The notes under the pieces are model-generated. The model did no database searches, was not told the DNA's origin, and saw only the letters and a list, made by a program, of their open reading frames with translations. A stretch of DNA of 64,000 nucleotides from Anthoceros angustus (lineage: Eukaryota > Plantae > Anthocerotophyta). Positions 3,303 through 23,772 of the stretch are shown here, piece after piece (position 1 is the first letter of the stretch; every line of letters starts with the position of its first letter). The DNA lies in assembly GCA_010909165.1 (NCBI GenBank), contig MU008191.1, forward strand, positions 310,001 to 374,000, in the 5' to 3' direction. Made by a program: the position numbers and the translations under genes.

Positions 3303-4143
3303 CCCTCCCACCTAGATGAGAGTGGCCCACGTCCAGAAAAGTCTTGACGGAGGCGCTAGGCGAGTTAAGGGTTGATAACAATGAATGGCCCCGGATTCTT
3401 CGTCATGGAGGCCGACATCTGACGCAGTGCAGATCGTGAGAGGTCTTGAATTGTATTGGAATTGGAGGCCGGGTGTGCTTTCTGCGCATTCCGTCGGAAT
3501 CCGCCTTGTTCAGCTTCCAAGGGACCATGATTTCGAGCAGAGGCTCTCTTTTAATATGCGCTCGGTCGTGAAGGCGATCTTGCGGCACGAATCTGGTGTC
3601 ATCTCCGTCCTTCTTGTTTTCCAGGCTCGTCTGCATCCGAGAGGTCGGTGGTGATAAGTTTGAACTGAGCGCTCTGCTCTTTCTTTGTCCATTCGGTAGG
3701 ATAAAACGTCATTTCTTCACCTGTCACCTAACCCTGGTTCACCTTTCACACGCAGTTCTGGTAGCCTTATCCATTTGCGGAGGTGGCGGTGGCTCCGGGA
3801 GGCAGCCTCACAACGGCTGCAGATTCCTCTCTCGCGGACTACTTTGCTTTTCTTCCCGTGCAGTCCCTCCTCCGCCATCTTTGCTGAATTTGCACGACTG
3901 CCACTGTGCTGTGTACCGTGCTCTGTTGTATAACTTGTCCCCGGAAGTCATCAACCAGTGTTTGTCCTCCTTGGCGTCTTCTGTCATATCAGTAAAGCGG
4001 TGGTTGCAGATCCTGCATGCTATTGAACGGTATCCTTGCGTAGACTACGGTCCACCTGTGTGCTCGACCGGGAGTGGAGCCGGTCGAGCTTCCCTGCATA
4101 AATCAATTTTTGCTCTGAGAGGACGTCGAACACTGCTTCCAAG

Positions 4144-5638
4144 ATGATGCTCGCCATGTTTGTACTGGGGGTGATTGGTGCGATCTGCGAACCCTACATT
4201 GTCAATGTGTACTCCTGCCCTCGCCAATTGGACAAAATCCCCTTCAAATGACTCCCTAGAATCCGCGAATTTTGTTGAAACAGGGTGGGAACTCGCAGGC
4301 CTTGATGTTTTTCTCTAATTTGTTGCAGGAAACATCACTTCCATGTTCTTGTTTCTCTCACCGACGTGCGTATCTATACCAACAACCAATCCAGCCCCTT
4401 CAGAACTTGTATTTCCTGCACATAAGTTTGTAACTAATAGGTGGTCTGCAGGGATGGAATAGCGTGTCTGGAAGAAATTAATAGCCTGCTTTAAATTTGT
4501 GTCACAATTGAATGTGAGCTTGAAGCTTCTACGCAAACCGATAAAACAAGCAAATGACATTTCAATATTTCAGGCCGACTTTCTTGAGAGTCTTGAAAAC
4601 AAGGAGCACCGGAGAATACTCGGCTGTACCATATGTTTGCACTCTGCTGAATTGCCTGCTATGGTTGCTGTACGGGGCGGTGAAATCTCTCACTTTGGTT
4701 CTTACCATCAACGGAGCTGGCCTTGTACTGGAGGCGATGTACCTGATCATCTTCTTGGCTCTTGCTCCCAAGAAGGGCAAGGTAAACTCCTCATGGCGTT
4801 CAAATTCCCGCCGATCTTTTCCCATCACAACAGTGAATAATCACTGCCGTGCTCTCATAAACGCGATTATTAGTGAGCCTTACGCATCTACCCGGTTTCA
4901 TTGTATGCAGCTTCATGTCTTCTACATGCTCCTGGCCGTGTCTGTATTCTACGCGATTCTGGTTTTGGTGGTGGTGTTTGCGTTGCCCAATGACTCACAA
5001 GGTGTAGTTGTAGGATCCATTTGCGTAATTATTGGGACCTTGATGTATGCTTCTCCTCTCGCAGCCATGGTAAGCTGCTATCTCAACTTCAATGATCAAT
5101 ACAATGCTGAGCACAGCACTCCACAACTGTTACAAACAGCTAACGCATGTTCTTGTTTCCACCAGAATCTGGTGGTGAAGACAAGGAGCGTGCAGTACAT
5201 GCCTTTTCTCTTGTCCTTGGCTTCCTTCCTTAACGGTTGCCTGTGGACAGCGTATGGATGCTTTGCAGCAGATGTGTTTATCATCGTAAGATGCTCCCTC
5301 GCCTGCCCTCGCAAATGCAGCGTAGCGAGAAACACCGCGTGTCCATACTGACATTTGTTTCATGCGAGTTGCAGCTTCCCAACGGCCTGGGAACCGTGTT
5401 AGGTGGAGTTCAGCTCGCGCTATACGCATACTACAAAAAGTATGGAGTCAAGGGCGGCATGGGAGAGGAGGAGACCGTCTCTCACGACCCGGAGCTTTGT
5501 GTTATCGAGTTCGATGAAAAGAAGATCATCATCAGCCCGATCAGTGCCGACCCAGAGAGGGCTCCTTCCCCTTCTCCTCCTCCTCCGGAAGCAACGGAAG
5601 CAACGGAAGCATCGGAAGCACCGGAACCGGAGAGCTGA
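4144..5638 (+). CDS. SWEET: SWEET (MtN3/saliva) sugar transporter
   Basis: Typical 6-exon SWEET structure: 4144-4177 (MMLAMFVLGVIG), 4329-4365 (NITSMFLFLSPT), 4574-4781, 4911-5069, 5166-5285, 5375-5638. Motifs PTF..YS.VPY, MYASPL, TRSVQYMPF, PNGLG. The C-terminal tail has a 9-bp EAT/EAS/EAP repeat. Confidence 0.95.
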
Positions 5639-5702
5639 GCCTGAGGTGCTTCGCATTTAAAAGCGATTTCTGTGAGGAACGTTTCGTTTCTTGGTTGCCA
5701 CC

Positions 5703-5737
5703 GGCATTCGGCATTCGCCATTCGCCATTCGCCAATC
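5703..5737. repeat. 7-bp tandem repeat (G[G/C]CATTC x5) in the SWEET 3' region
   Basis: ggcattc ggcattc gccattc gccattc gccaatc. Confidence 0.8.
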
Positions 5738-5992
5738 GGAGCCGCTTTGAAGTGTTTTGCAAAGAAGGGACCTGAATCTGCATCAAGACTTCTGCGACGC
5801 CCTCCTAGCTCTCATGCACGGGGATTTGAAGGCTCTGTGTCTTGTAATGCTCAACAAAATTCTGCCGTTAGCCACTTGCGCAATTCGATACTTTACACTT
5901 GTCAATAATTGATACAGCTCCCAAACGGGAATCCACATCACTAGACGTGACAATAATTCAAGGAAAAGAATGACGAGGACCTTATTCGGCCT

Positions 5993-8362
5993 CTACTGCA
6001 CGGAAAATTTTTGAAAACCTCCCACTCCGCCGCCCCTGGGCTTCTTGGACCTGGACCAGCTGCTCTCGTTTTGGATGACTTCCACATTCAGGGCCCCTTC
6101 TATCAGTCGTTCTGCTGTGGGCGCCATCTCTTGGACGTACTCAATTGACTCTGATAATCTTGACAGCAGGTTGAACAAGGCAATAACCTCATTCCGCTGG
6201 AGATGCAGCTGCCAAGCACATTGGAAGAGTGAGAACCTGCAAACAAAGGAAGGTGGATAGCAGATCTCAGATTACAAATAGGCTCACCTCGGTGCTTCGA
6301 GTATGAATCTCATTGTCCGCTGCAAACAAGATCTTCAGAGCCGTACCCAAACCTAGCACCTGTAGCTTACCCCACAGTCTACATTTCTCACAACCTACAC
6401 AGTCCATCAAGGCACTGCACAACTGCCAAGTCAGATCAGCCGTGCATCACGAAAACAACACTGCAAATATGATGTCCAGAGATGGGAGGTATGAACCACA
6501 CCTTATATTTCGGAAATGCTGCTGAATCTGCCCTTTCAGTTCAGCCCCATCTGCACCTTTCCACATCTGGGCTTCATTGAACGGAAGCGGACATGCCGAC
6601 CTCAGCTCCTCACTTTCGAGGAACTCCACAACCATCTGGTGTGTGGTTGCATCCTCTACCGGATCCCCAGTGCTGTACTCAGCTTGCGAGAGAAAGTCAC
6701 CAGCCTGTCAGAAAGAGAACAAGAGGGTGAGACATTATGTAGACATACGTTGTAACAAGTGAGTTGAACGAACATTCCTCCGTCAGAAGACACAGTACCA
6801 AAAGATCCAGAGACATTTGTGAATCAGAACCACTTCTCACCTTCATGATAGCTCTTAGGACAAAAAGGTAAGTGAAATACAAATTCTTGATCCGCCAGGG
6901 ATACTGCAGTACTCGCTCATAGAATAAGACTGGGTTGGGTCCCCACTGGACAAAAAAATATTAACATGAGCAATTGAGAAGAATGGCAGTGTATCTACGC
7001 ATACATCATTAAGCGGCTTTGCAAATCATTCACCTACTTTGTTTGTTGCCTCATCAAGAAGGTAGTCGGCAGCGATGTGTGTGGAAATCGATGTGTGAAG
7101 TCCTGAAATAAGGCGGAAAAACACTCGCCTTTCGGCGCAAGTATCTTCTGACTCATCTGATCAAGCAAAATGCAATCAATCATGAGCCTACTGACATTGT
7201 TGCTTTTCTTCTGAATTTCTTCTGAACATGTGACAAGCTTACTCACCGTAGAAGCAGTTCTCCTCGTATATAGCATTCCATATTCTGCGTGCAGAGGGTC
7301 CTGTGTAGCCCGTGTATCTTTCAGGATTACGAAGTAGATTCACGTAAGTCATTTCCCCTGCATCAGTCACACAGGTTGGGCAGTTAGCAAATCAATCCGA
7401 ACATCAAGCAACAGCGACAGCATACAACCCAGAAAGAATATTCACCTAAAACCATGATGTACTAACAGTGAACGGTTCACGAGATTACCATTGTCAGTTT
7501 CATCGTCGTAAGTCCACGGATTGTCCACTTCCATCCACCGCTTGAATGCAACATTGTCAAGAGTCCGATCGACAGTACCCTGTGGTTTGCCTTCTTGACA
7601 CACAGTATCCTCTGCTGAAAGGTGCCCCTTATTCCCCTTGAAAGCTTCAGGAAACTCATTGTCTGGACATTCACAGACACTGCAGTCCCTCAGACGGCAC
7701 ATGCCATCATCTGGCCAGAAAAGACAATCACACCATAGTCGTACCTGATTCATAGCGAGACACGGTTACCTAGCCTGTCTGAAACAAAAAACATCCACCA
7801 TGACAAAAGAAGGCAGATCTTACCTTAAAGTATCGGAAAAAAGGTTTTGTGACTAGTTCACGTAGGATTGGGCGAATCACATCATGATTCAGCTTAGTGA
7901 CAGTCTGATAGTCGCAACAGCAGTCCTCGACAACTCCGGTCAGATTCTGAAGTTGCTGCAAACAGACAAGCTGAAAACAATCAAACTACAAATTCCCACA
8001 AGCAATACACAATGATGAGCCTGAAGCCTACAAGCTGGATCCAAACCCTAGCTACCTTCCTTTGACTGGAATTTCTGAATAGCCGGCTGACACAAGCAAG
8101 GTTAACTGGATGTCGATGTACTGTAAGAAATTCTGGCCAAGGTAAGCTGGCGCTACACCGAGGAAACTGAAACTCGATTCAGTACCTTACAGCTGCAAGG
8201 CGGATCAGAAGCGGTTGAAGCCTTAAGAATAGGATTATAAAGCGGATGACGTGCGCCAGCCCATGCTATCGCGAGCACTGCTACCAAGGTGCTGATTACA
8301 ATAAAGGGCCGCACTCTGCAGGACGTCCTCCATTTGCTCACGGCCACATTCTCCCTCGCCAT
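5993..8362 (-). CDS. ERO1: Endoplasmic reticulum oxidoreductin-1
   Basis: Multi-exon. Motifs [14 protein letters not shown], [20 protein letters not shown], [34 protein letters not shown] (CxxCxxC) and [12 protein letters not shown]-terminal membrane anchor present. Confidence 0.95.
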
Positions 8363-9070
8363 TTCTCGTCTCCACCAACAATTAGAGTACCAGCATAGGT
8401 AGTCCAATTCGGGCTCCAAGATCTCAAGAACAGGTTATCGAGAACCGAAACCGATCCAAACAAGCACGACACTACTTCGGCATCCAAAGCCACACCTCCA
8501 GCTGGCCGCAGGGAGCAGAAGGAGAGCCAAACAGCAAGCGCCGTGCCATCCCCAGCTCGCCAGAACACTTCCAACCAGCTGTGGTCACCAATCGGCCCGG
8601 CTCAGCTCCCGCAACGGCCCACGGCCGAGTCTTCCACCGGCGAGCCTCACGCATCGCGGAAACACACGTGATTCGCAATTGGCAGAGGAACGAGTCCACA
8701 GGCGACGCGTCGAGGAAGGCGCAAGCTCGAAGCACCGGAGGAAGCAAGGACTGAGCCCATTGTGGCTGGCTTGGGCGTCACGACCGCGAAGCCGCGTCGC
8801 CTTGGCCCCGGAAGCGTCCAGAGACCCGAGGTTAGCCCGCAATTAGGTGCCACCCGATGAGATTAAATCGGTAGACCAAGCTGCCTCGTCGACAGGGCAG
8901 CCCACGTGGCGCCCGTGACCAGGTCACCTCTTATTAATTTTATTGTTAATGAACACGGAAATCTAAAATTACAAACCTACCAATACTGGTCAAACTTATA
9001 CCAAGACATACTTGTAAAACTCTAGCTATTCTTTCAATCACCATCATACCATAATTTGTAAAACACAAAG

Positions 9071-12000
9071 CTATTCTTTCATCACCTTTTGTAAGTGTTC
9101 AGTTCTCCAAAATACAAGTTGCCTTTTTGGATCAATGCCCTCCAGAGTAAGAGGTTTTGCAAGATACCCATAGAGAATGAGCTTAGCTTGATTTTTCTCA
9201 TCGATTCTTACAAGATCGATGGTCTCCTTCAATCCAGTTTCAGTTTTTGGAAGACTTTTCCAAACCGGACGAACTCTAATCCAATCAACGAAACCACGAC
9301 CATGGGAAGAGAATTGCTTGTGAAGATTATTGGCATCTTGCCAACCCTCCTGAGTAGGTGGAAATCTCAACAATACCTTGCCTCTATGCCCATGTTTGCC
9401 CATAATTGGAATGAATGATCCATTGCCTTTGTATCCAAGATCTAAAAAAACATACAACACAAAAATATAAGAATGAATAGATGTTTATTAGAGTTAAAAG
9501 CTTTGTTATGTGGAACCTAAGTGCATTTGTATGTGTATTCCAAGAGAACCAACCTTGAAGCATTAGACTTAGCTCAAAGTCGTTCAAGCCTACCCAACGT
9601 TTCTTCACATGACGAATCCGAGCATTTTCAATTATCACCATAGGAGGCCATACTATCTTCCTATGGTGATTTTTTCTAATGCCAGTCTTTGTTATCAATG
9701 CTGCACATTATATGAAACCACACAATAAATAGAAAATACAAAGCTTCATAAAAATAAAATAAATAATATATTTTATACAATAATACTTTTGGAAACAGCC
9801 TCATACTTACCAGCCATATCAATAGATTTTCCTACGTGGTCTAATCCCAGAACATCACATATTGCTCTTGCATATCCACGATGCTCTGGAAGTTTAGGTG
9901 CTTTAATTGCATGTCCATGTGCTACTAGAGATGGTACATCATGAAAGCTCTCTTTCCTGAAGTAGGCAAGGAATATATTCTCACTCAATAAATCTCATAC
10001 AATAGGAAAGGTCTCGTTTCTCAAAAAAGCAAAGAATATGTACTTACTTAATATATCCCATTAAATATATTATACCTGTTTAAGCTTTCACAAACATGAC
10101 AAAATAAATTTGTGCTGGTTTCCAAATCTATTTTCACAGAGTCATTATTGGTCAAAAAATTTGTAAACTCGACAACAGCCTTTTCTTCTCGTTCAAACAT
10201 TTCTTCATCATAGTCATTGGCTTCCTCTATGACCAAGGTTGTTTGAGGTGATTTTGGCCTATTTTGTTCCACTGAAGATCTATCTTGGACATTAATTGAT
10301 TTTACAGGTGATTCGACTTGCTCTATTGATGATCCATAGAGAAAGTTGGGTTTCCATATCAAGTGGGCATGTTTCTTCTTCGAATTCTTGTTGTAATCTG
10401 TATTATTCTGGTCACTTCTTTTACTGCTTGTAAATGCTTTTCCTTGAGAAACAGGTTCAGTAGTATTACTAACAGTTGTCGCATCACTACACTGTGTGTC
10501 ATGTTGATCCACTTCTTGCAATATGCCACAATTTTGCTCTATTCGTTCAAATTCCAATGAAGTATGCGAAAGTTCATCAGATATGCCATTATTACAGGAA
10601 ACTTTGGGTCTTTTTTTATCTTTATAATTGTTTTCCCTCTTATCACTTGATGCATTCTTTGTATCGCCATTGCTAGAACAAACAACTCCATGTTCATTTG
10701 AAAGAAGTTTGAGATTACTGTTAGCCTCATCCCATGTCTCCCTTAACCTCTTCTTTTTATGTGCTTGTTGCTCATGATTAAGTGCATCTACAAGGTAGTC
10801 AAAATCTTCAACCAAAATAGTTCCATCAATTTTTTCTGTCATGCTTGACATGTTGGTGATGATCTTCTCCGCGTCCTGGTTTGTGCTTGTCAAAAACATA
10901 TTTTTCTTCCCATATTTTTTATCATAATTTTCTTTACATTTCTTTTGACCACATCTTAACCAATTGGTACACACATCATGAGGACCATGTCGGTATTGTT
11001 CGTCAATAATATGCTTTTGCCCATTCTTCACACTCACATGTTGTAAGGGAGAATAATCTGGGGCTTCTATACTTGGACTTGGAATCTCAACAGAAAGTCT
11101 TTTATACTTGTTTTTTTGTTCTAAAATATGATTAAATGAAGGAAAATTTTGGGGAATTTCATTTTGTTGCAATCCAAAATTTTGGTTTGCATCATGTGAA
11201 CTAGATGGTTGGACATGACAATCTCCTATATTTTTAAAATATGTATTTTGAACAAAAGATTTGTTTTCACAATTTCGAAAATCATTCATGGGCCACAAAC
11301 CTGGTTTAGGCAAAAGTTCTCTTGGAGCTTTCAAAGTATTTGCTTCACTAAAGAACCAATTGTTTTCTTGACCAACTACCAAATTACTTAAATTTGTGTT
11401 AGACTCACCATTAGCTAATGACTTCCAAGTACCAAATGTATTGGCTGGGTTGCTACAAAACGCTCCCTGGTAGCCTTTGTTAACTGCATCAACTTCAACA
11501 GAGTACATGGGGAGGTTATACTTTCTTTCCTCAAAATCTTTATTAGGATTCGAGCAAAAGTGAGGATTAATATCACTAGATTGAAAAACATTGTCAATGG
11601 ACTTAGCTCTTAAGTTTTGAGGAACAAGTATATCAGACAAACTTGGAGTATTGAATTTTAGCCCGTCCACTTGGATCATTGAAGGGTAAGCAAATTCATC
11701 ATATGTTGGTAGTTTTAGTGGTCTCTTACTTGACAAATCCTTGTTGGCATCTAGAAAACTGTCTTGAGGGAATCTATCCAAAACAACCACACCCGAAGTA
11801 ACTTGGTTGCCACATTTATAAGGAAGTATATTCTTTGGAAAGATTGGACAAAAATTCTGATCTATACTTTTTGACCCAATATTGAGATCACTCTTCAGCA
11901 ATTCAGAGTACGCACCCGCATTTGAAAATGAAGTTGAGCTATATCTAGTATCTAAAGCACTTATAGGTGTGGACTTGGGATGGATACAAGATGTTATGTT

Positions 12001-12411
12001 TGTATCTAACCCACTGGAGACGTAATCTAATCCATCTAATCTAGAAGTTAAGGTAGTCATGGGGTTCTGACTTACAACATTTTGAGGCATAGAAAAAAAT
12101 CTGTGGCCTGAAAGAGTATCATAGTTTTCCTTTCTCGTTTCATTGAGATTAGAAAAAGTGGGATTGATGGCAGCACTTTGAGTGAGAGGATTCCCCAGAA
12201 GTAAAGAAGACACGTTTTGTGTGATTGTCTGTCCCATCATGCTTCCATCATTCATGCTATAAACTCCACCATATGATGTGCCATTTGCAATTGGAACTTT
12301 TTTTTCCAAAAGAGTTGCCACTTCATTCACTCTAAAACCAATCTCCATGTGACCATTCACTTCAACAGCAAATGGAGAAAGCCCATAGGAAGAATATTGT
12401 GAGTCCATCAT
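9071..12411 (-). CDS. XS-domain protein (SGS3/At3g22430-like) with a long low-complexity N-terminus and a C2HC-type zinc motif
   Basis: Exons 12411-10076, 9956-9811, 9700-9554, 9441-9071. FCHVC..FHDVPSLVAH..H..HRGYARAICDVLG is followed by WPPMVIIEN, GHRG..L.F..T.EGW.DA..L...F and LYGYLA (XS signature). The start codon is uncertain. Confidence 0.75.
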
Positions 12412-13080
12412 ATCACCACCACATTCCACTTCAATCCTCTCGAAATCGTGCAACCAGCCTCCTTTGAACAAGACTATACTGAGTGGCTCCCTATATATAA
12501 TCCATCATATCTAGTTGCACCATCTTTGTAGAGATGAGACTCTCAGCTCAAGCCAAGTATTTTTTTATTTCTAGTGACAAAGCCCAAGCAAAGATACATG
12601 TGTGTATATTAGTGAAGTGGATTTTCAGAAGGGGTTTTTTTATTGATCTGGTTTTTTATTACTTTTAGGTAAATAAATTAATACTGATTAATTTTGGCTG
12701 AACTCAGTTTCTTCAACAACTCGATCTATCGCCATCGATACCAATGACCCCTTTTTGTTGTTTTTATCGACACTCTTCCCAACACGCGTTCAACCGAGCT
12801 CCGATTCCAGCGCTCACAACCTTCGGAAAACGTAAGTTCCAGCAGCTCACAACTTTCGGAGAACTTGAGTTCCAGCAAATCTTGGGAGGAGAAATGCCTA
12901 GAGGCTCCACTGGCACACCTGATAAGAGTGCACTTGCGTTTGGAGGTAGGCACGTGAGGGAGCCATCTTGTGAGACGAGCTTCTAGGTTATCTCAATTTT
13001 AATTAGCTTGATCGGGAACGCTGCAGCTCATGGTGATTCTGGCAGAGCTGAACGTGAGAGAACTCGAATCAGCTGGAGGA

Positions 13081-15291
13081 TTACTCAGGAAGCTCGAGCG
13101 GCTTCCAGGCTGCAAGCAACTGGTCGGGGAAATCGGGACTCACGAATTCCTGCACCACCTCCGCCTGCAAAATCTCCAGCACTCTGGCCGAGGTGACGTA
13201 CCGCGGAGTCTTGTACTGGTTGCCTCCTCCCACGGACACCGCGTACTCCAGAAGCTTCCCGAAGGTGCCTTCCCTCACGACCCGCAGCTTCAAAGAGCCG
13301 ATGGTCTTCGCCACCCGGCCGCGCATATACGGGTTGTTGAAAGACTGGTCCAGCGAGGTGCAGCATTTCTGCAGGACTTCCTGCGGCAGATTTGTGCTGC
13401 TCTTGAGCTCCCAGTAGATGACGTAGCTGCCGGGCCTGGCCGTCATGTCGGCGTGGCTGGTGAAGTCGGACAGCTCCAGGCCCGCGTCCCTCAGTTGGAG
13501 GGCGGCCTTGGCGACAACCGCCATCAGCTCCGCCTCGTCCGTCTTGTCCGTGTTCACACTGAGTACCACGTTCTTTCTACACACGAACTCCACCTTCGGG
13601 GTCTGGTTGTAGAACCCCACCACCTTCACGATATCCGACATCCGGTACCTGTACAATCCTGCAGACACAGATTGCCGTCAGACTCTTCCTTCTCTCCAAC
13701 TGTAGACCAGCAAAACAAGGGGATCTGACAAGCTTCCGAACCTCCATGGCTGGTGGTGAACACCAGCTCGTAGATCTGCCCAACCTTCACATCCGCAATC
13801 CCCACAGGCGGGCCCTCCGAGTAATCGGCAGTGGCAGCAACGTGCAAATCTTCTCCCGCTCCTTCATCCGGCCTGTAAAGCGGGATGAACTCCATGTAAG
13901 CCACATCCGGCACCAAGGTGAAGACGGCGTCTTCCGGCCTGTTCCTAGGGTTCAGATTCGACCCCAGCCAGGCCTCGGAGGAGCCATAGTCTCCAGAAAC
14001 CTGCACACATTTCAACATGATCCGCCATTAATCTTGCCACTCCCGATCGATACTGCATACAGGGTTTCAATCCAAGCATTCCTCACCAAGGGCAAGTCCG
14101 GGCCGAGGTATCTCTGCAACACAGGCACGTACGGCCGCATCGCTCCCGTCACGATCCCGATGACAAACTTGGCATTCGGCCATAGCCGCTTCACGATCCC
14201 CTCCCACTCCCCGCCGGCACACTCCTCCTCCACTCTGCTCGCGGCCAAGGGATCCGGCCCGCTCAGAAGCTTCTCCACAGCCGCACGAATTTCCGGGTCC
14301 CGGACTCGCTCCCAACTCACCTCCCCGGTCCTGAGATCCTCCGCCAGCTCCCGCCACGCCTGCTCCAGGCACCGGAACCCTTCCACCAGCCCGTAGGCGA
14401 ACAGGGAGTTCAGGCTCTGGATCTCCCGATGGAGCTTCAACCCGCACAGCAGGTGGCAATACATGGACTCCCGGATGTCGTATCCGAGAATGACCTCGTC
14501 CGGGCTCACGGTGGCAGGCGGGTTTCCCACCCTGCCCCTCACCCTGTTCTTGAACATGTCACTGCGGAAGAAGGAAGTGCTGTCTGTCGCGGCCACCAGC
14601 CCGCCCTTGGTGGGAAACATCCTCCCAGCGTAGCTGAAGGACACGCATCTGGACCCGGGCTCCAGGGGATACACCCTGCAAGGCGAGCTCAGCACCAATC
14701 CATCCTCTGCCCGGGAACAATGTAGCAAAAGAATTCCAGCTGAGCTGAGCTCACTCACATGTTTCTGAGAAGATCATTCCGCTTGCCCATCTTGAATGCC
14801 GCCTCTCCCTTCCCCTTTGCCGTCACAGGGATCATCTTGGACTTGCCCCCGCTCGTCCCCGAGCTGCATCACAGATTGGGCAAACCGGAGTTCACCGGAT
14901 TTGCAGACAACTTCCTTGAACTCTGCTGCTGCATTTGCAATTCCATTGCCATAGCCATAGCCATAGCCATTGCCATTGCCTACCTCAGCGTGAGCCTGGC
15001 CACGGGCTCTGCAGTCAGGATAGGTGATTTGTCTCCGTCCATGATGCGCTGGATGTCGGCCTCGACGTCGGCATATGTGATGACAGGAACAGAGGCCTTG
15101 AAAGAGGCCTCGTCCGTCCTGCCATTGAGCTGCGTGCGGCGTAGGTACTCCGTGTCGGCATTCTCCTTGAGGATTTTCTCCAGGAGCTGCCTCTGCACCT
15201 CCACAGCGTTCTTCGTGACGTGCTGCAGATCTTCCCACACCTCCTTGTCCCCGGGCCTGAGCAACACCGGCTCCTCCTCAGCTCCTGCCAT
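13081..15291 (-). CDS. GH3: GH3 acyl acid-amido synthetase, copy 1
   Basis: Exons 15291-14984, 14863-14759, 14675-14087, 14000-13742, 13658-13081 splice in frame. Motifs SSGTSGGKSKMIP, DYGSSE, YRYRMSD and QYKTPR. Confidence 0.93.
14945..14980. repeat. Hexamer microsatellite (GCCATA/GCCATT) in GH3 copy 1 intron 1
   Basis: attgcc atagcc atagcc atagcc attgcc attgcc. Confidence 0.8.
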
Positions 15292-15462
15292 TTTCTGTGC
15301 TCTTGTCTAGAGCTGCAGACTCCTCCTTCTCTTGCGCACAACACACAGATGTTCACACCGTCAGCGAGACGCTCTTCATTCCTACCACGTGTCCTCCTGC
15401 GCCAGATAGACATATCCAATAGCACACCGTTTCCTTTCTGTGGACCAAGAATGGGCAAGGAA

Positions 15463-17772
15463 TCAGACAGTGTCCGGCAGAGGCTTCCAGGAGGCCAGCA
15501 GCGCGGCGGGGAAATCAGGGCTCTGGAACTCTTGCACCAGCTGGGCGTCGAGGATGGCCAGCACCTTCGGCGAAGTCACGCAGCGGGGGGTCTTGTACTG
15601 GCTGGCCCCGCCTCCAACGCCGAGGGCGAAATCCGCCAGCTTCCTGAACGATCCTTGCTTCACGACCCGGAGCTTCAAGGGGCCAATGGTGTTGGCTACC
15701 CGGCCGCGCATGTACGGGTTGTTGAAGGACTGGTCCAACAAAGTGCAGCATTTCTGCAGCACTTCCTGCCTCAAATTTGTGCTGCTCTTGAGCTCCCAGT
15801 AGATGACGTAGCTGCCGGGCCTGGATGTGATGTCGGCTTGGCTGGTGAAGTCCACCAGCTCGTTGTCCGCATCTGCGAGAAGGCGGGCTGCTTTGGCCAC
15901 CACAGCCATGAGCTCGGCCTCGTCCGTCTTGTCCGTGTTCACGCTCAGCACCACGTTCTTCCTGCACACGAAGGAGACCTTGGGGGCTTGGTGGTAGAAG
16001 CCCACCACCTTCACCACGTCGGACATGCGGTATCTGTAGAGGCCTGGGAAGATGGAGAGGGGGCCGGGTTCACACAGTCAGAGCTGCAGGGCCGACATGG
16101 GTTTTGCAGGGGAATTGGTTCAAGCTTGTGAGGAGTCGGATCATGGGATTATTACCAGCAAAGTTGGTGAAGACGAGCTCGTAGATTTGCCCAACCTTCA
16201 CATCAGCTATGCCCACAGGCGGACCTTCCAAGTAGACTGCAGTGGAGGCAACATGGACTTCCTCTTGTTCGTCCAGCCTGTAAAGGGGGACGAACTCCAA
16301 GTACACCACGTCAGGCACCAAGGTGAAGACACTGTCTTCTGGAGGATTTAGGGGGTCGAGGTTGGAGCCAACCCAGCCCTCACTGGCACCATAGTCTCCC
16401 GAAAGCTGCACGACACCATAGTCACCGCTTCACCACCTTTGCTCCACAGTGCATTGCTCTTCAAATCAGGACATACAGCAAACAACACAACGTTCACATG
16501 GTTAGAAAGAAACAGGCTGATGAGACTCTCACTCACCAGTGGCAGGTCCGGGCTCAAGTATCTCTGCAACACAGGCACATAAGGAGCCATGGCTCCAGTC
16601 AAGATGCACTTGACAAACTTGGCCCTGGGCCACAGCCTGTGCACCACGCCCTCCCAGACTCCCTTCCCACACTCCTCCTCCACCCTCCGAGCAGCCTCCA
16701 CATCCGGCCCGCCCAGAAGCTTCTCCACAGCCGCACGCATGTCCTGGTCCACCACACGCTTAGCACTCACCGTGCCCGTCCTCAGGTCTTCCACCAGCTC
16801 CCGCCAGGCCTGCTCCAGGCACCGGAATCCCTCAGCCAGCCCGTAGGCGAAGATGGAGTCGATGCTCTCCACCTCCTGGTACCGCTTCAGCCCACACAGA
16901 AGGTGGCAGTACATGGACTCCGGGATGCTGTACCCCAGAATCACCTCGTCCGGGCTCACCCAGGCGGGCGCATTCTGCACCACACTCCTCTCCCTGTTCT
17001 TGAACATGTCGCTCCGGAAGGCTATGGAAGTCCCGGCCCCTGCCTTGAGCCCTCCTTTGGTGGTGAAGACCTTCCCTGCGTAGCTGAAGGACAAGCTCCT
17101 GGAGCCCGGCTTGAGAGGGAAAGCCCTGCCATGGATCCAAGCTCCACCCACCCATGTCAGCAACAAGGCGTGATTAGACACCTGACATGCTCCAACTCTT
17201 TCTGCAATGATTCACCTCGAAGACAATTCTGTCAAGAGTCATCGGATTCTCACTCACATGTTCCTGGCCAGATCAAACCGCTTGATCATGAGGGGAGGAA
17301 AGCTGAGAGACCTGGCCGTGGTGGGGAGCATCTTGGCCTTGCCCCCGCTGGTCCCAGAGCTGCAGTGCAAAAAGGCCCTCAGCACTCAACCACAGCTCCC
17401 CAACTGCAGCGTGCTCAACAATTTCCACCATCACCACATCAGTCCATCTGACCTCAGAGTCAAGTTCAGCACGGGGTCCGCACACAGAATGGGCGACTTG
17501 TCCCCGTCCGCAATGCGTTGCACATCGGCCTCAATGTCCTCAAACGTGATGAGCGGCACGCAGGCCCGGAAGGAAGCTTCGTCGCTCCTGCCATTCAGCT
17601 GGGTGCGCTGCCTCAGGTACTCCGTGTTCCCGTTCTTCTCCAGGATCTCCTGCAGCACCCGCTTCTGCACCACCACCGCATTTTGCAGCTTGTACTGCAG
17701 ATCCTCCCAAATCTCCTTGTCTCCCGGCCTCACCAACAACTGGGCAACCCGGCCCGCCGCCATCTCCACCAT
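15463..17772 (-). CDS. GH3: GH3 acyl acid-amido synthetase, copy 2
   Basis: Exons 17772-17453, 17359-17258, 17125-16537, 16405-16156, 16043-15463, with the same intron positions as copy 1. Motifs SSGTSGGKAKMLP, DYGASE, YRYRMSD and QYKTPR. Confidence 0.93.
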
Positions 17773-17781
17773 CCCCTGCCC

Positions 17782-17809
17782 GGACTCGGACTCGGACTCG
17801 GACTCGGAC
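17782..17809. repeat. GGACTC hexamer repeat just upstream of the GH3 copy 2 ATG
   Basis: ggactc x4 plus ggac. Confidence 0.8.
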
Positions 17810-18081
17810 CTCTGGACTCAGATGAATTCATTCATGCCTTACAAGAATCTTATCCGATTGTAAGCTTCTTGGCTTGGATTATTTTACTCTATACATCACA
17901 TAGGTACTGCGATCTGCTTCGGGTTAGGTGATGTATCGGCTACCTGATTCTTTCGAAGAAGCCCCTCCCCTAGAGGGTGCAGAATGGGTTTCATCAGGTG
18001 TAAGTCCGGTCCCATTACGATAGACCGGCCATTCCCGCGATTAGAACCACACATTGCGGAGTTCCCAGAGTTCACCGGTCA

Positions 18082-19764
18082 TCAGATTCCCCGCCAGTAG
18101 CGCAAGAACTCTGGGTCCTTGTGCAGCTGATCCATCTGGTGGGGGAACAGCCGCAGAGAGGCATCGACGCTTCCAGGCCCGAGCATGCCCGGGTTCAGGA
18201 CCAGCACGAAGGGGAAGTTCTGGGTCACCTGGCGGACGCACGCAGGTTTACCCCACCCGAAATCGCACTCCATGGCGGGGAGCTTGTTGGATCCCATTGC
18301 AGCGGCCCCGTTTCTCGACACTATCGCATGGCTGAAGGCGTCGTGCTGCTCAGACTGCTGGATGAAGTCCGCAATCGCCTCGCTTTTGATGCCCTTGGCG
18401 ATGGCCTGGGGCGGACGGGAGTCAGTCCCGTTCTTCGGTCCATGCCACTGGAGAGGCGGGAGTGAAGGAGGGTGAAATCATCTCACCTGGTGGATGAGGG
18501 TGGCGGCGAAGGAAACAGGGCTGGTGAGGAGCTCCTGGGCCGTGGCCGTGGCCACCACGTTGTAGGCTGCGTTGCCGAAGTAGTTTTGCGGGAGGAAGGG
18601 GAGACGGTCCCGGCATCCGGCTGGGACGATGATGGGCGCTTCCTCGCCTCCGGCAACGTCGCGAGCCCGGGTGATGCATCTCCAGAACAGCGCACACACG
18701 ACCTGGTGACATGAGGAGATGTTGGATGAGTGCATGGCAGCAAGGGTCGTAAGGGGAACGGAGGGCTGGACGTATGTGCTCACCTCGTAGGTGGTGAACC
18801 AGCGGGGAGAATCATGGCCGATTTGGGAGACTGGGAGCGCGTCGGCCTTCAGCTGGCTCAGTCTGTCAGGGGAGAAGCAGAAGTATGTCTCCTTGGTGGG
18901 GGGTATGAGCTTGAGCCGCGACTTGGGGATCATGCCTCCTCCGTTCTTCACCTCCGTGGTGGACAGAAAGTTGAAGCGCTCGGCGATGTCCGAGTTCCCT
19001 GGCAGGATTGCATCGCTGAGCTTCTTCAGGCCGGGAGAGCTGGAAGGGTGCAATAGGGTCCGGTCGTGGAGAGGGGGACTAAGCAGTGGCAGGTTTCTGG
19101 CAATCTCTCCCCAGGATTTGACGAAGGTCCAAAACCCCGTCCCGTCTGCAACAACATGGTTGAAGGCTAGGCCCAGGGCAATGCCTCCGCATTTGAATCT
19201 TGTCACCTGCAGGATGATCAACTTGAGACGTGCATCACAGCTGCACGCGTACATCATTTTTTCATGCCTCTTTTGTACAACTTGGTTCCAAGGGTTTGGG
19301 AATGGTACCTGGATTGAAAGGAGGGGAAGCTTGTGAAAGGTCGTGTGATCACCTTCGGCGTCCGGGGCGGCGATGAGATTGTCAAACAGGTCAGGATTTG
19401 GTTGGAACTCTGGTAGCAGAGAATCCAGAGATGAGTCCGCCTCTGCTGTCACGAATGGAATGCCCGCATCATTGCACTTCAGGGATGGCCTTGCTCCGTT
19501 TTGGGAGTCGTCTATCTCTGTCAGACTTCCTGCAAACGGATAGAAATGCACCAAGGCATCCCCCAGGCTGGACTTCAGCTTCTCAACCAAGCTGGGGAAC
19601 GTGGGAGCCCCTCCTTGAGCCGGAAAGAACAGTAGCCGGCGGATGTAGGGAAAATGCCACATGCGCAGGTCAAAGCAGGATAGGAAGAGGCTTTGAGAGC
19701 CTGTAGGACTGGTGGGACTGATCGTCCAGGACTGCTGCAGGGTCACCATGTCCGCTCTGCTCAT
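18082..19764 (-). CDS. BAHD acyl-CoA acyltransferase
   Basis: Exons 19764-19309, 19206-18784, 18702-18487, 18405-18082. HVVAD (HxxxD), DFGWG, FYPFAG, QVTRFKCGG and YFGN motifs. Confidence 0.93.
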
Positions 19765-20084
19765 CGGATGTGCAATTCAACTTTGAAATAGAAGCCTGAT
19801 GCAGCCAAAGTCCTGAGGCACAGAATGTGAGACTTTGTCTCCAGGCGAGCAACATAGGGTGGAATCTCTCCAAAGTGCCCACCACCTCACAATGCGGTGT
19901 CTCCTGTGAAACAGAAGGGCTTTCTCACCAACCCATTCATGACTTCCAAGAATAGCACGAAGACGCATAACTATTCACGTGGTGCTCGGTATTCAAAGCT
20001 TGTCAGAATGATGCTCCCAGCAGTGGATGGCCGGTGTTGTGGGCTACCTCCCACGATCCAGACTACGTGCATAATTTTTAACCC

Positions 20085-22338
20085 CTACGCGTTGCCCGAT
20101 GCTGAATTCCCCGCTGTTAGCAACTGTTCTGGAAAATCAGGACTCTGAAACTCCTCTAATATTCGGCCATTCAGGATGTCGAGAAGCTTTGCTGACTTCA
20201 CACAGCGTGGGGTCTTGTAGTTACTGTCTCCTCCTCCAAGGCTTTTCACGTACTCGGTAATCTGCTCAAACGTTCCTCCCTGCAACACACGGAGCTTCAA
20301 TGGCCCGTGTGTTTTAGCAACCCTTCCAACCCTGTAGAAGCTGCCGAAGGACTGATCCATGACTGTGCAGCATGTCTGAAGGGTATCGATGGGCAAATTT
20401 TCATCCTTGTTGAGCTCCCAGTAGATTACGTAACAGCCTGGTCGGGAAGTCGTATCTGCATAGCTGGTGAAATCCACAACCTCCAACTGTTCTGCTTTCA
20501 GGTGTTTCGCTGCTTTGGCAACCACCGCCATGAGCTCAGCCTCATCTGTCTTGTCCGTGTTTACACTCAACACCACATTCTTCCGATACATAAATTTCAC
20601 AACCGGAGACTGGTGGTAGAAGCCTACTACCTTCAACACATCCCCCAAGCGGTACCTATACAGACCTGGTCAGGACAAACGTGCAGGTTTTAGATAAAAC
20701 GTGGTTCGGATAGTCTCTAGCATTGCTGGCTACGAGGACAGCGGACGCAGTCTTACCAGTGAAAGTAGTGAACACAGGTTCGTAGTCCTGCCCCACTTGG
20801 AGGTCCCCAAATCCCACAGGCTCACCCTCCGGATGATTTGCAGTGGCAGACACATGAATCTCATCTTGAACTCCAAGATAACCGTCCTTCGCCTTATGCA
20901 GTGGGATGAACTCCAAGTAAACCACATCTGATGCCAAAGTGAACACTGTGTCGTCTGGAGCATTGCGGGGGTTGAAGTTTGAGCCAATCCAACCCTCTGA
21001 GGCACCGTAATGTGCTGAAACCTGCAGGAAGCACAATTCTCATCCTCCTGCTCATAGTCTGAGGAAGAGTAGACGCAACAGATGCGAGCACATTGATGCT
21101 AAAACTAATTCTACTAGTATCCGTTGAGAGCTCACCAGCGGCAATTCAGGGCCTGCATATCTCTGCACCGCAGGCACGTACGGCTTCATGGAACCTGTGA
21201 TGATTGCTTGAATGTACGTCGCGCTTGGCCATAACCGTTTGGCAATTCCTTCCCAGTCTCCGCTTCCACATTCCTTCTCCACTCTAGCCGCAGCCTCAGG
21301 ATCCGGGCCTTCCAAAAGCTTCTCCACTGCAGCTCTCACTTCTTCTTCCGAGACTCGCTCCACGCTCACCGTCCCCGTCCTCAGATCCTCAGCGATTTCC
21401 TGCCACACGTGCTCCAGGAAGCGAAATGCTTCCGAGACGCGATACACAAATATGGAAACAATGGCTTCCACCTTCCGGTAGAGCTTCAGGCCGCACAGAA
21501 GATGGCAATACATGGCTTCCCGCGTTCTCCCAGCGCAAATCACCTCATCCGGGCTCAGCGAAGTCGGGAACGGGAACACTACGTTCTTTGGCCGATTCTT
21601 GTAAGCTGCGCTCCGGTAAAAGACGGCCGCGGCGGATCCGAGAGGGAGGCCGCCTTTTGAGGTGGATGCCTTGGATGCGTAGTTGAATCCCAAGACTTTG
21701 GCACCGGGAATGAGCGGGAATGCCCTGCCACAAGCGCTCAAAAAACATCAACCAGCTATCTCCACAGGATTCCTGCGACCTTCCGTCACAAGAAGCTGAG
21801 CAAGAATCAAACAAGGAGAAAGGTTCAAACATGTTCCGGAACAGGTCGCATCTCCTGAACATCTTGAAAGGAACACCAGCGATCTCTGCCGTCTGCGGTA
21901 TCATCTTCAGCTTCCCGCCTGAAGTTCCAGAGCTGCAGGCACACGCGATCAGTGCAACGAACTTCAATCTCACAATCGATCCAGGAGAAGAAGGAACCTC
22001 GCCAAATCCATCGCCTCCGACAACAATCACCTTAGATACATCGCAGAGATGCGGTCCGCGCACAGAATCGGAGAGGCGTCTCCATCTGCAATCCGCTGCA
22101 GGTCCTCCTCATAGTCCGCATGAGTTGTGAGGGGGATGCAGGCCTTGAAGGATTGCTCGTCGGTCCTGCCATCGAGCCGGTGGCGCTGCAAGTATTCCGT
22201 GCCAGCATTCTTCTTCAAAATGCTCTGGAGCAGCTGCCTTTGCACCTCCACAGCATTCCGCGTGGTGTACTGCACCTCATCCCAGATTTCTTTGTCCCCA
22301 GGCCGCAGCAGCACCGGTTCGAATTCCGCGCTGTCCAT
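20085..22338 (-). CDS. GH3: GH3 acyl acid-amido synthetase, copy 3 (more divergent)
   Basis: Exons 22338-22031, 21932-21831, 21724-21136, 21021-20757, 20665-20085. Motifs SSGTSGGKLKMIP, HYGASE, YRYRLGD and NYKTPR. Confidence 0.93.
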
Positions 22339-22339
22339 A

Positions 22340-22401
22340 GCGTCTCAAACACAGCATCCGGCGTCTCAAACACAGCATCCGGCGTCTCAAACGCAGCATC
22401 C
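22340..22401. repeat. 21-bp tandem repeat x3 directly upstream of the GH3 copy 3 start codon
   Basis: gcgtctcaaacacagcatccg x2 plus gcgtctcaaacgcagcatcc. Confidence 0.9.
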
Positions 22402-22564
22402 CCAGGTCTGAACGGTAAAACTGGAGCTTTCTAGTATAGAAAGTGTGTGGATATGCTGAAAGAGGAGATTCCAGGCTCGCTTGGCTTGCTTTGTTGCTGA
22501 AGGAGGGGATTCAAGCCTTGCAAGGCTTGGCTTGCTCTGTTGCTGCAGCAGCGCAGAGCTGGCG

Positions 22565-23772
22565 ATGGAATCCGGTGGGAGCTTTCCGGGAGGCTTCGAC
22601 ACGCTGGACCGGCTGCTGGAGGCGCATCTGCCACCGGAGGCTCTGGCGCAGGTGCGGAGAGTGATGCTGGGACTGAACGGGACGGAGCCGGCGGGAAGGC
22701 TGGAGCTCCCGAAGCTGCTCCGGACGGTGGCCAGTCTCGGGGACTTCGACATCCAGGGTACCAGTTCTCGGCGGCCAGGGAGGAGCTGCGGCTGCCGCGG
22801 CTGGTGCGGATCGGGCTCATCCAGAACGCGGTGGTGCTGCCTACCACGGCCCCGGTGGCGGAGCAGCGGAAGGCGCTGATGGAGCGGGTGGGAAAGCTGG
22901 TGTCCACGGCGGGGGAGGCGGGGGTGAACGTGCTGTGTTTGCAGGAGGCCTGGACAATGCCGTTCGCCTTCTGCACCAGGGAGAAGGGCTGGTGCGAGTT
23001 TGCGGAGGGCGTGTACGGGAAGAGCACGGCCTTTCTGCAGGCCTTCGCGAAGCGGTACAGCATGGTGGTGGTGAGCCCGATTCTGGAGAGGGACGAGTTG
23101 CACGGCGGGGTGCTGTGGAATACCGCTGTGGTTATTGGCAGCAAGGGGAACATCATCGGGAAGCACAGGAAGAATCATATACCCAGGGTGGGGGATTTTA
23201 ACGAGAGTACGTATTACATGGAGGGGGAAACCGGGCATCCCGTGTTCGAGACCGAGTATGGCAAGATTGCTGTGAATATCTGCTACGGGAGGCACCATAC
23301 TCTTAACTGGCAGGCGTTTGGGTTGAATGGGGCGGAGATTGTGTTTAATCCGTCTGCCACTGTTGGGGAGCTGAGTGAGCCCATGTGGGGCGTGGAGGCA
23401 AGGAATGCTGCTATTGCCAACAGTTACTTCGTGGGTGCTATCAATCGTGTGGGGACTGAGCATTTTCCCAGGCCCTTTACTTCCGGGGATGGCAAGCCTG
23501 CTCATACTGATTTCGGGCATTTCTATGGCTCCAGCTATGTGGCTGCCCCGGATGCTTCTTGCACTCCTAGCCTTTCTCGTTGCAAGGATGGGCTCATGGT
23601 TGCTCTGGTCGATCTGAACTTGTGCCAGCAAGTGAAGGACAAGTGGGGGTTTAGGATGACGGCTCGATATGATATGTATGCCCAGCTCTTTAACAGGTAC
23701 TTGCAGCATGGCTTCAAGCCGCAGATTGTCAGGGATCCTACTTTGGACGAGCATGAGCTGAAACCTTTCTGA
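22565..23772 (+). CDS. PYD3: Beta-ureidopropionase (nitrilase superfamily), intronless, with a 1-nt frameshift near 22757
   Basis: MES...[13 protein letters not shown]-type N-terminus, LQEAW (catalytic E), [13 protein letters not shown] (K), NICYGRHH (C), FNPSAT and HFYGSS. The frame changes at catccagggtaccag, where IQGYQF is expected. Confidence 0.9.

Follow-up and report, generated by a model that had tools for sequence, protein, structure and literature searches.

Does a hornwort locus in which three GH3 genes enclose a BAHD acyltransferase gene represent a biosynthetic gene cluster, or an ordinary tandem array with unrelated neighbours? The question is raised by a 64,000-nucleotide stretch of the Anthoceros angustus genome (assembly GCA_010909165.1, contig MU008191.1, positions 310,001 to 374,000 of the forward strand; hereafter "the window"), where GH3a, GH3b, the BAHD gene and GH3c share one strand and PYD3, a beta-ureidopropionase gene, follows on the other. 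An initial annotation, made from the sequence alone, had read all five genes as a candidate biosynthetic cluster. We find a real, expressed and old GH3 and BAHD neighbourhood that is specific to hornworts, and predict, with a probability of roughly 0.45, that the GH3s and the BAHD are functionally coupled as a two-family conjugation module of specialised metabolism.

Gene models were built with a splice-aware approach against full-length GH3 and BAHD homologs, alongside a Pfam scan of open reading frames (ORFs), and gave the following layout.

13081..15291, minus strand: GH3a, 612 aa in five exons (15291-14984, 14863-14759, 14675-14087, 14000-13742, 13658-13081), from Pfam GH3 N/M/C matches and the splice model
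15292..15462: spacer from the GH3b stop to the GH3a start, 171 bp, from model coordinates
15463..17772, minus strand: GH3b, 613 aa in five exons (17772-17453, 17359-17258, 17125-16537, 16405-16156, 16043-15463), from Pfam, model and RNA
17773..18081: spacer from the BAHD stop to the GH3b start, 309 bp, covered throughout by RNA contigs of related organisms
18082..19764, minus strand: BAHD acyltransferase, 472 aa in four exons (19764-19309, 19206-18784, 18702-18487, 18405-18082), from Pfam PF02458, model and RNA
19765..20084: spacer from the GH3c stop to the BAHD start, 320 bp, transcribed throughout according to RNA contigs
20085..22338, minus strand: GH3c, 614 aa in five exons (22338-22031, 21932-21831, 21724-21136, 21021-20757, 20665-20085), from Pfam, model and RNA
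22339..22564: common 5' region of GH3c and PYD3, with a 21-bp x3 tandem repeat (22340-22401) and the intron of the PYD3 5' untranslated region (UTR; 22404-22522), from TRF and RNA joints
22565..23772, plus strand: PYD3 beta-ureidopropionase, ~402 aa in a single coding exon, from a CN_hydrolase Pfam match

The four minus-strand genes span 9.26 kb and all their introns are GT-AG, in close agreement with the earlier description of a co-oriented GH3-GH3-BAHD-GH3 run within 9.3 kb with gaps of about 170, 310 and 320 bp. The BAHD gene does lie inside the GH3 array, between GH3b and GH3c, and the three GH3s are intact as had been proposed, each being a five-exon model with adenylation motifs. PYD3 also stands head-to-head with the array as described, 226 bp separating its ATG from that of GH3c. 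The four minus-strand genes are intact and under purifying selection, the dN/dS ratio being 0.09–0.22 for all pairs compared (0.22 for GH3a against GH3b). A six-frame hidden Markov model (HMM) scan of the 64-kb window detected no further GH3 or BAHD copies or relics.

Transcription of the locus was assessed by comparing positions 17420-23400 with four RNA runs in the form of Logan contigs: X1 from the window's own organism, X2 and X4 from a relative in which ~5–10% of letters differ, and X18 from a third organism. All three BAHD introns (102, 81 and 81 nt) appear as RNA joints at the predicted sites, the two 81-nt introns in all four runs and the 102-nt intron in X1 and X18. For GH3c, four of four introns appear as joints, each in three to four runs. 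A 1547-nt X1 contig (record 1) stops exactly at the GH3b exon-1 donor, 17453, and in this contig 967 nt precede the match to exon 5 (an exon that cross-matches GH3c). This length is that of modelled exons 2–4 (941 nt) with 26 nt more, and the GH3b model is thereby validated. The GH3a model rests on its ORF, homology and a dN/dS of 0.22 relative to GH3b, the gene being outside the RNA-compared stretch. GH3b, BAHD, GH3c and PYD3 were present in four of four runs with contig depths within ~5-fold, depth of this kind being a poor measure and the runs offering no contrast of conditions.

The RNA contigs also run between genes. The GH3c/BAHD spacer is bridged unbroken by X2 record 11 (19307-20475), X4 record 17 (19307-20194) and X1 record 4 (19651-20663). 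In X18 record 6 (region 17555-18404) the last BAHD exon is joined to GH3b exon 1 with 237 nt between them, and contigs bridging the same two exons, with indels, occur in X2 and X4. Unbroken RNA across GH3c-BAHD and BAHD-GH3b was therefore recovered from three organisms in all, and the adjacency of BAHD and GH3 extends by this route to two congeneric organisms. Successive transcripts of the array either overlap in their UTRs or read through, and the contigs do not separate the two. Among the interspecies indels listed, those found fall in the GH3c-BAHD spacer and the PYD3 5' region, with none in coding sequence.

Composition varies across the array. GC content at third codon positions is 0.81 in GH3a and GH3b, 0.73 in BAHD and 0.62 in GH3c, a marked contrast between adjoining paralogs. 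Two hexanucleotide microsatellites are present, (TTGCCA)n at 14935-14980 in GH3a intron 1 and (CGGACT)n at 17781-17819, just 5' of the GH3b ATG.

All three GH3 genes match the N-terminal, middle and C-terminal GH3 domains (PF03321, PF23571 and PF23572), covering HMM positions 1–593 in five exon pieces in each gene. Adenylation by GH3 enzymes depends on a P-loop of the form (S/T)SGT(S/T)xG..K, a YxxSE motif and the Asp of a YRxGD-type motif. The P-loop SSGTSGGK was found in three of three GH3s, as was YGSSE or YGASE (YGSSE in GH3a). The third motif reads LYRYRLGD in GH3c and LYRYRMSD in GH3a and GH3b, a Gly to Ser change that also occurs in a GH3 gene of a distant hornwort (contig L002, below) and is hence old and tolerated. 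GH3a, GH3b and GH3c thus carry every motif required for adenylation of a carboxylic acid and its ligation to an amino acid.

The GH3 tree was assembled by a phmmer search with one exon across the library and cluster look-ups, followed by a careful IQ-TREE inference, with distant GH3-like proteins as the root; its sampling consists of 50%-identity representatives that match the one exon. GH3a, GH3b and GH3c form one clade (100/100) with the GH3s of two contigs from a distant hornwort, L001 and L002, and a Nothoceros aenigmaticus transcript. This clade is nested in an 18-row clade (100/96) corresponding to group I, which takes in seed-plant JAR4-like and GH3.10-like proteins, fern proteins and Selaginella JAR1-1 and JAR1L4; the best named database matches of the array GH3s are likewise mostly JAR1, JAR4 or JAR6. 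The other large clade, that of GH3.12, GH3.17 and GH3.8, takes in the GH3s of Riccia, Marchantia paleacea and Ceratodon as well as a second GH3 of Nothoceros (P0069). On this tree the array is best placed as an extra, hornwort-specific GH3 lineage within the JAR1/GH3.10 group. Within it, GH3c is the ortholog of the L001 GH3 (100/99), and the L002 and Nothoceros sequences cluster with GH3a and GH3b (100/98), hence the duplication separating c from a/b is older than the split of the window's genus from the Nothoceros-like hornwort. The tree suggests that the JAR1 lineage could be older than vascular plants, with hornworts as survivors that still carry it. Its absence from mosses and liverworts is not established given the sampling used here, and older papers reportedly placed moss GH3s near group I.

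The BAHD gene product matches PF02458 (E 2.5e-59) and keeps both family motifs: the catalytic HXXXD with its His intact (FNHVVADG in the window, FNHVVTDG in L001) and DFGWG (ECDFGWGKP in the window and in L001). The ortholog on L001 shares 59% identity with it across 467 aa and has the same four exons and the same motifs. The closest database relatives, fern hypothetical proteins and proteins annotated as HHT or SHT, are 29–30% identical. The protein is hornwort-specific, with no relative above ~30% identity outside hornworts. Scored against solved structures it reaches ~106–120 bits with HCT, SHT and rosmarinate synthase (RAS) and 69 bits with EPS1, and in a quick tree it groups on long branches with uncharacterised fern proteins and At3g50280-like "acetyltransferases". 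In the C-terminal exon, a Ser stands in place of the AtHCT oxyanion-hole residue Trp371 (T-x-W) and aligns with EPS1 Ser367. An identity as an EPS1-type isochorismoyl-glutamate lyase was considered and rejected: the catalytic His is kept, and only the Trp371-to-Ser change is common to both proteins. In Anthoceros, the rosmarinate synthase and the roles of the other BAHDs are still open (PMC8891189).

Whether the linkage is conserved in relatives could be asked of one distant relative with genomic context, Logan assembly SRR33208241 (contigs L001 and L002), whose GH3 groups with Nothoceros. On L001 (11.5 kb), the BAHD ortholog (4526-6515) is followed by a GH3c-type gene (7076-9510), 576 bp apart and on the same strand. 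The conserved linkage that the initial annotation had proposed as a check is therefore present in this relative, with the order swapped: GH3c-BAHD-GH3b-GH3a in the window becomes BAHD-GH3c in L001, and both flanks differ. Upstream of the L001 pair (4.5 kb) and downstream of it (2 kb) there was no GH3, BAHD or PYD3, nor any match to the window's other genes. Adjacency of BAHD and GH3 has thus been kept across a deep hornwort split despite local rearrangement.

The second contig, L002, carries an a/b-type GH3 with a convergent pentatricopeptide repeat (PPR) gene; a search of it for PYD3 and for additional GH3 or BAHD relics gave nothing. No end overlap joins L001 and L002, both of which end in low-complexity DNA. 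The L002 PPR ORF (3392-6088, minus strand, 898 aa) is 40–50% similar to a PPR gene at 29585-32473 of the window, on the other side of PYD3, which may be family similarity or a rearranged neighbourhood. Searches for more relatives, in protein collections that do not include the window's own genus, added little, that with BAHD exon 1 giving only the L001 fragment and that with a GH3 exon only a partial Nothoceros transcript without genomic context. In vascular plants, no BAHD was found within 10 kb of Selaginella P0072 GH3, the sister of the hornwort clade, or of Adiantum P0039 GH3, and the best fern BAHD and best fern GH3 matches lie on separate contigs.

What such a module might do can be outlined from the enzymes themselves. 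The tandem group-I-like GH3s, kept on one strand with 171–320 bp spacers beside a single hornwort-specific BAHD that retains its catalytic His, would activate a carboxylic acid by adenylation and couple it to an amino acid. Because the solved structures nearest to the BAHD are HCT, SHT and RAS, its acyl donor is probably a hydroxycinnamoyl-type CoA. Anthoceros produces amides of glutamate with benzoic and cinnamic acids, and these N-acyl-glutamates would fit the module because a Glu-using GH3, an N-acylating BAHD, or both, would make such products. As a guess, the most attractive products would be the N-(hydroxybenzoyl/hydroxycinnamoyl)-glutamates known from Anthoceros, the main alternative being oxylipin conjugates. 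The acylated N-acyl amino-acid amide named as product by the initial annotation is likewise a reasonable guess, and nothing more.

A precedent for GH3-then-BAHD chemistry exists in Brassicaceae salicylic-acid synthesis, in which PBS3 (GH3.12) makes isochorismoyl-glutamate and the BAHD-family protein EPS1 processes it (PMC11605079). The hornwort locus resembles this system in pairing a GH3 ligase with a BAHD-family protein, which would act in succession, and in the Ser of its BAHD that aligns with EPS1 Ser367. It differs in that EPS1, the type of a lyase with a filled acyl-CoA site, has Ser for His in HXXXD, whereas the hornwort BAHD keeps HVVAD, and in that PBS3 belongs to group III and the array GH3s to group I. 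PBS3 and EPS1 are not known to be linked in Arabidopsis, whereas the hornwort genes abut. A His-retaining tomato "EPS1" has been reported as bifunctional (PMC12225020).

Comparison with other characterised members of the two families shows similar mixtures of likeness and distance. The array GH3s share a superclade (100/96), three domains and adenylation motifs with the jasmonoyl-isoleucine synthetases JAR1/GH3.11 and GH3.10, but are only ~38–46% identical to them, form a separate clade, are tandemly triplicated and are linked to a BAHD. Marchantia MpGH3A is also a bryophyte GH3 and makes Glu, Gln and His conjugates of dinor-iso-12-oxo-phytodienoic acid (dn-iso-OPDA); the sampled liverwort GH3s (Riccia, Marchantia paleacea), however, fall in the other main clade, the MpGH3A sequence itself not being in the tree. 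Clade-V-type HCT, SHT, rosmarinate synthase and HHT are the best solved or annotated relatives of the BAHD, with HXXXD and DFGWG motifs and similar length, yet the BAHD is ≤30% identical to them and has Ser for the T-x-W Trp. Like plant biosynthetic gene clusters such as the Marchantia monoterpene cluster (10.64898/2026.07.16.738752), the locus has non-homologous enzyme genes that are co-located and co-oriented, with tandem duplicates. Unlike them it has two enzyme families only, and it is no more than a candidate cluster.

The fifth gene, PYD3, had been included in the proposed cluster, and its 5' region does meet that of GH3c. PYD3 matches PF00795 CN_hydrolase (E 6e-54; ORF 22540-23772, plus strand) and the beta-ureidopropionases of Drosophila (E 7e-155) and human (E 5e-148), and contains the stretches CLQEAW, HRKNH and NICYGRHH, which we take to be the Glu-Lys-Cys triad. 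In the window the gene is split over two frames, the N-terminus in the frame of 22565 and the body in that of 22756, one base out of register. RNA from X1, X2 and X4 contains one more G than the window after 22755, in a G-run, and this G restores the frame; in the third organism an A is inserted 3 nt further on. As the extra G is carried by RNA of the same organism at full depth (29/29 in X1), PYD3 is intact and the window has a 1-nt deletion, arising in the assembly or the strain. The genome sequence as written would wrongly suggest a frameshifted PYD3.

Upstream of its ATG, PYD3 has a 5'-UTR intron (GT..AG, 119 nt, 22404-22522) seen in X1 as a joint from 22403 to 22523, and the exon before it reaches at least 22363 in X1, 25 nt from the GH3c ATG. 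The 21-bp x3 repeat at 22340-22401 lies directly 5' of the GH3c ATG and inside this first PYD3 exon, and a related organism has a different number of copies (46-nt skip). In X4, record 18 extends from spliced exons of GH3c into PYD3. UTRs, the intron and the repeat thus fill the 226-bp interval, no untranscribed spacer is visible in it, and the divergent GH3c and PYD3 transcripts touch or overlap.

Common regulation of the pair is possible with such an arrangement, and would suit a five-gene pathway in which PYD3 supplies beta-alanine or beta-aminoisobutyrate, the GH3s ligate it to an acyl acid and the BAHD then acylates the product. We regard this pathway as very improbable. Divergent gene pairs with tiny spacing are routine in compact genomes, PYD3 is missing from the sampled flanks of the L001 pair, and the strong match to the insect and human enzymes marks PYD3 as a highly conserved housekeeping enzyme of pyrimidine catabolism. 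We also know of no GH3 reported with beta-alanine as its preferred amino acid. We judge PYD3 to be a housekeeping neighbour and not a member of the array, its only tie to the GH3s being the common 5' region. The initial claim of a biosynthetic cluster thus survives in part: the linkage of GH3 and BAHD, kept in L001, stands, and the inclusion of PYD3 is not supported. Of the three enzyme families with chainable chemistry, two are linked specialised classes (three GH3s and one BAHD), PYD3 belonging to primary metabolism.

Functional coupling of the GH3s and the BAHD is made plausible by the hornwort-specific nature of both gene lineages, their retained adjacency, the tight co-oriented spacing, the continuous transcription and the PBS3/EPS1 precedent. 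The rival view is that the genes are independent neighbours, that is, an ordinary GH3 tandem array conjugating some acid with an unrelated BAHD inside it, their adjacency following from a compact genome and stable gene order. We consider that this could well be so, at somewhat less than even odds. Adjacent non-homologous plant genes are mostly unrelated in function. Hornwort autosomes are reportedly conserved (Schafran et al. 2025), and inertia may account for the adjacency. The flanking GH3 paralogs are direct repeats, and unequal crossing-over between them could swap the order to that of L001 without selection; close genes with overlapping UTRs should in any case yield unbroken RNA contigs. 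Other points that weigh against coupling concern its breadth and its sampling. Only two enzyme families are linked, with no other tailoring enzyme in 64 kb (no P450, methyltransferase or glycosyltransferase was found within the window), the distant relative is a single case, and no BAHD ortholog turned up in the Nothoceros transcriptome. On co-regulation, contig depths show only that the genes are on. The GH3 substrate is not reliably readable from sequence, as selectivity is not fixed by pocket residues alone (PMC11253546). Simple independence sits less comfortably with the presence in both the window and L001, for all their differing flanks, of a BAHD directly beside a co-oriented GH3 of this one clade, with the restriction of both lineages to hornworts, and with the existing precedent for the chemistry.

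A special case of independence would confine the GH3s to hormone homeostasis, inactivating an oxylipin (OPDA or dn-OPDA) or auxin by conjugation in the manner of MpGH3A, with the BAHD irrelevant. Bryophyte GH3s are known to form dn-iso-OPDA-Glu/Gln/His, and the array clade is nearest to the jasmonate-conjugating group I. We nonetheless think this unlikely. Arabidopsis group-I GH3s take jasmonic acid (JA) and not OPDA (PMC11663710), and hornworts, as examined in Anthoceros, contain little JA and no jasmonoyl-isoleucine (JA-Ile) and are unresponsive to either. Activity of the JAR1 type is, for the latter reasons, unlikely for the array GH3s. The separate Nothoceros GH3 that groups with liverwort and moss GH3s may already cover the hormonal role, and three conserved paralogs exceed the need for hormone buffering in a bryophyte, Marchantia having a total of two GH3 genes. 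It is therefore not obvious which ordinary hormone the array GH3s would take as substrate: Arabidopsis group-I enzymes refuse OPDA, Anthoceros is poor in and insensitive to JA, and a separate hornwort GH3 groups with those of liverworts, among them the family of the dn-OPDA-conjugating MpGH3A.

A more specific version of the coupled module can be drawn, which we offer as a long shot. A JAR1-lineage GH3, not represented among the few liverwort and moss GH3s sampled, would have been triplicated and welded to a private BAHD to give an independent pathway of two steps, GH3 first and BAHD second, in analogy to PBS3 and EPS1. The compounds that it makes or processes would be the N-aroyl- and N-cinnamoyl-glutamates of Anthoceros, a family that includes the alkaloid anthocerodiazonin and whose enzymes have been unknown since 1994, and the tight spacing would reflect read-through co-transcription.

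The remainder of the window is of mixed content, with a helicase, a SWEET transporter, an AT-rich ORF, a Kelch gene, PPR genes, a FAD-binding fragment, an OBG GTPase, a sorting nexin, INTS4 and a gag ORF. The AT-rich ORF (10048-12471, minus strand, 807 aa) lies in a 35% GC island directly downstream of GH3a; it had no Pfam match and only weak look-alikes in the atlas (zf-XS/SGS3-like, score ≤0.74), and may be a lineage-specific gene or a degenerate element marking the edge of the array. The SWEET (MtN3_slv) sugar-transporter exon at 4554-5351 (plus strand) is ~8 kb past GH3a and has no tie to the array.

Full-text literature searches found neither a GH3 and BAHD cluster nor an account of this locus. 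Should the coupling prove real, the locus would, going by those searches, be the first GH3 and BAHD gene cluster in any plant and among very few metabolic clusters in bryophytes, and it would provide four candidate genes for how Anthoceros makes its glutamate amides, or for a route to hormone conjugates that is specific to hornworts. Otherwise it is no more than a tandem array of the ordinary kind, accompanied by a bystander. Whatever the answer to the cluster question, an early JAR1 lineage in hornworts, if true, bears on the evolution of jasmonate conjugation.

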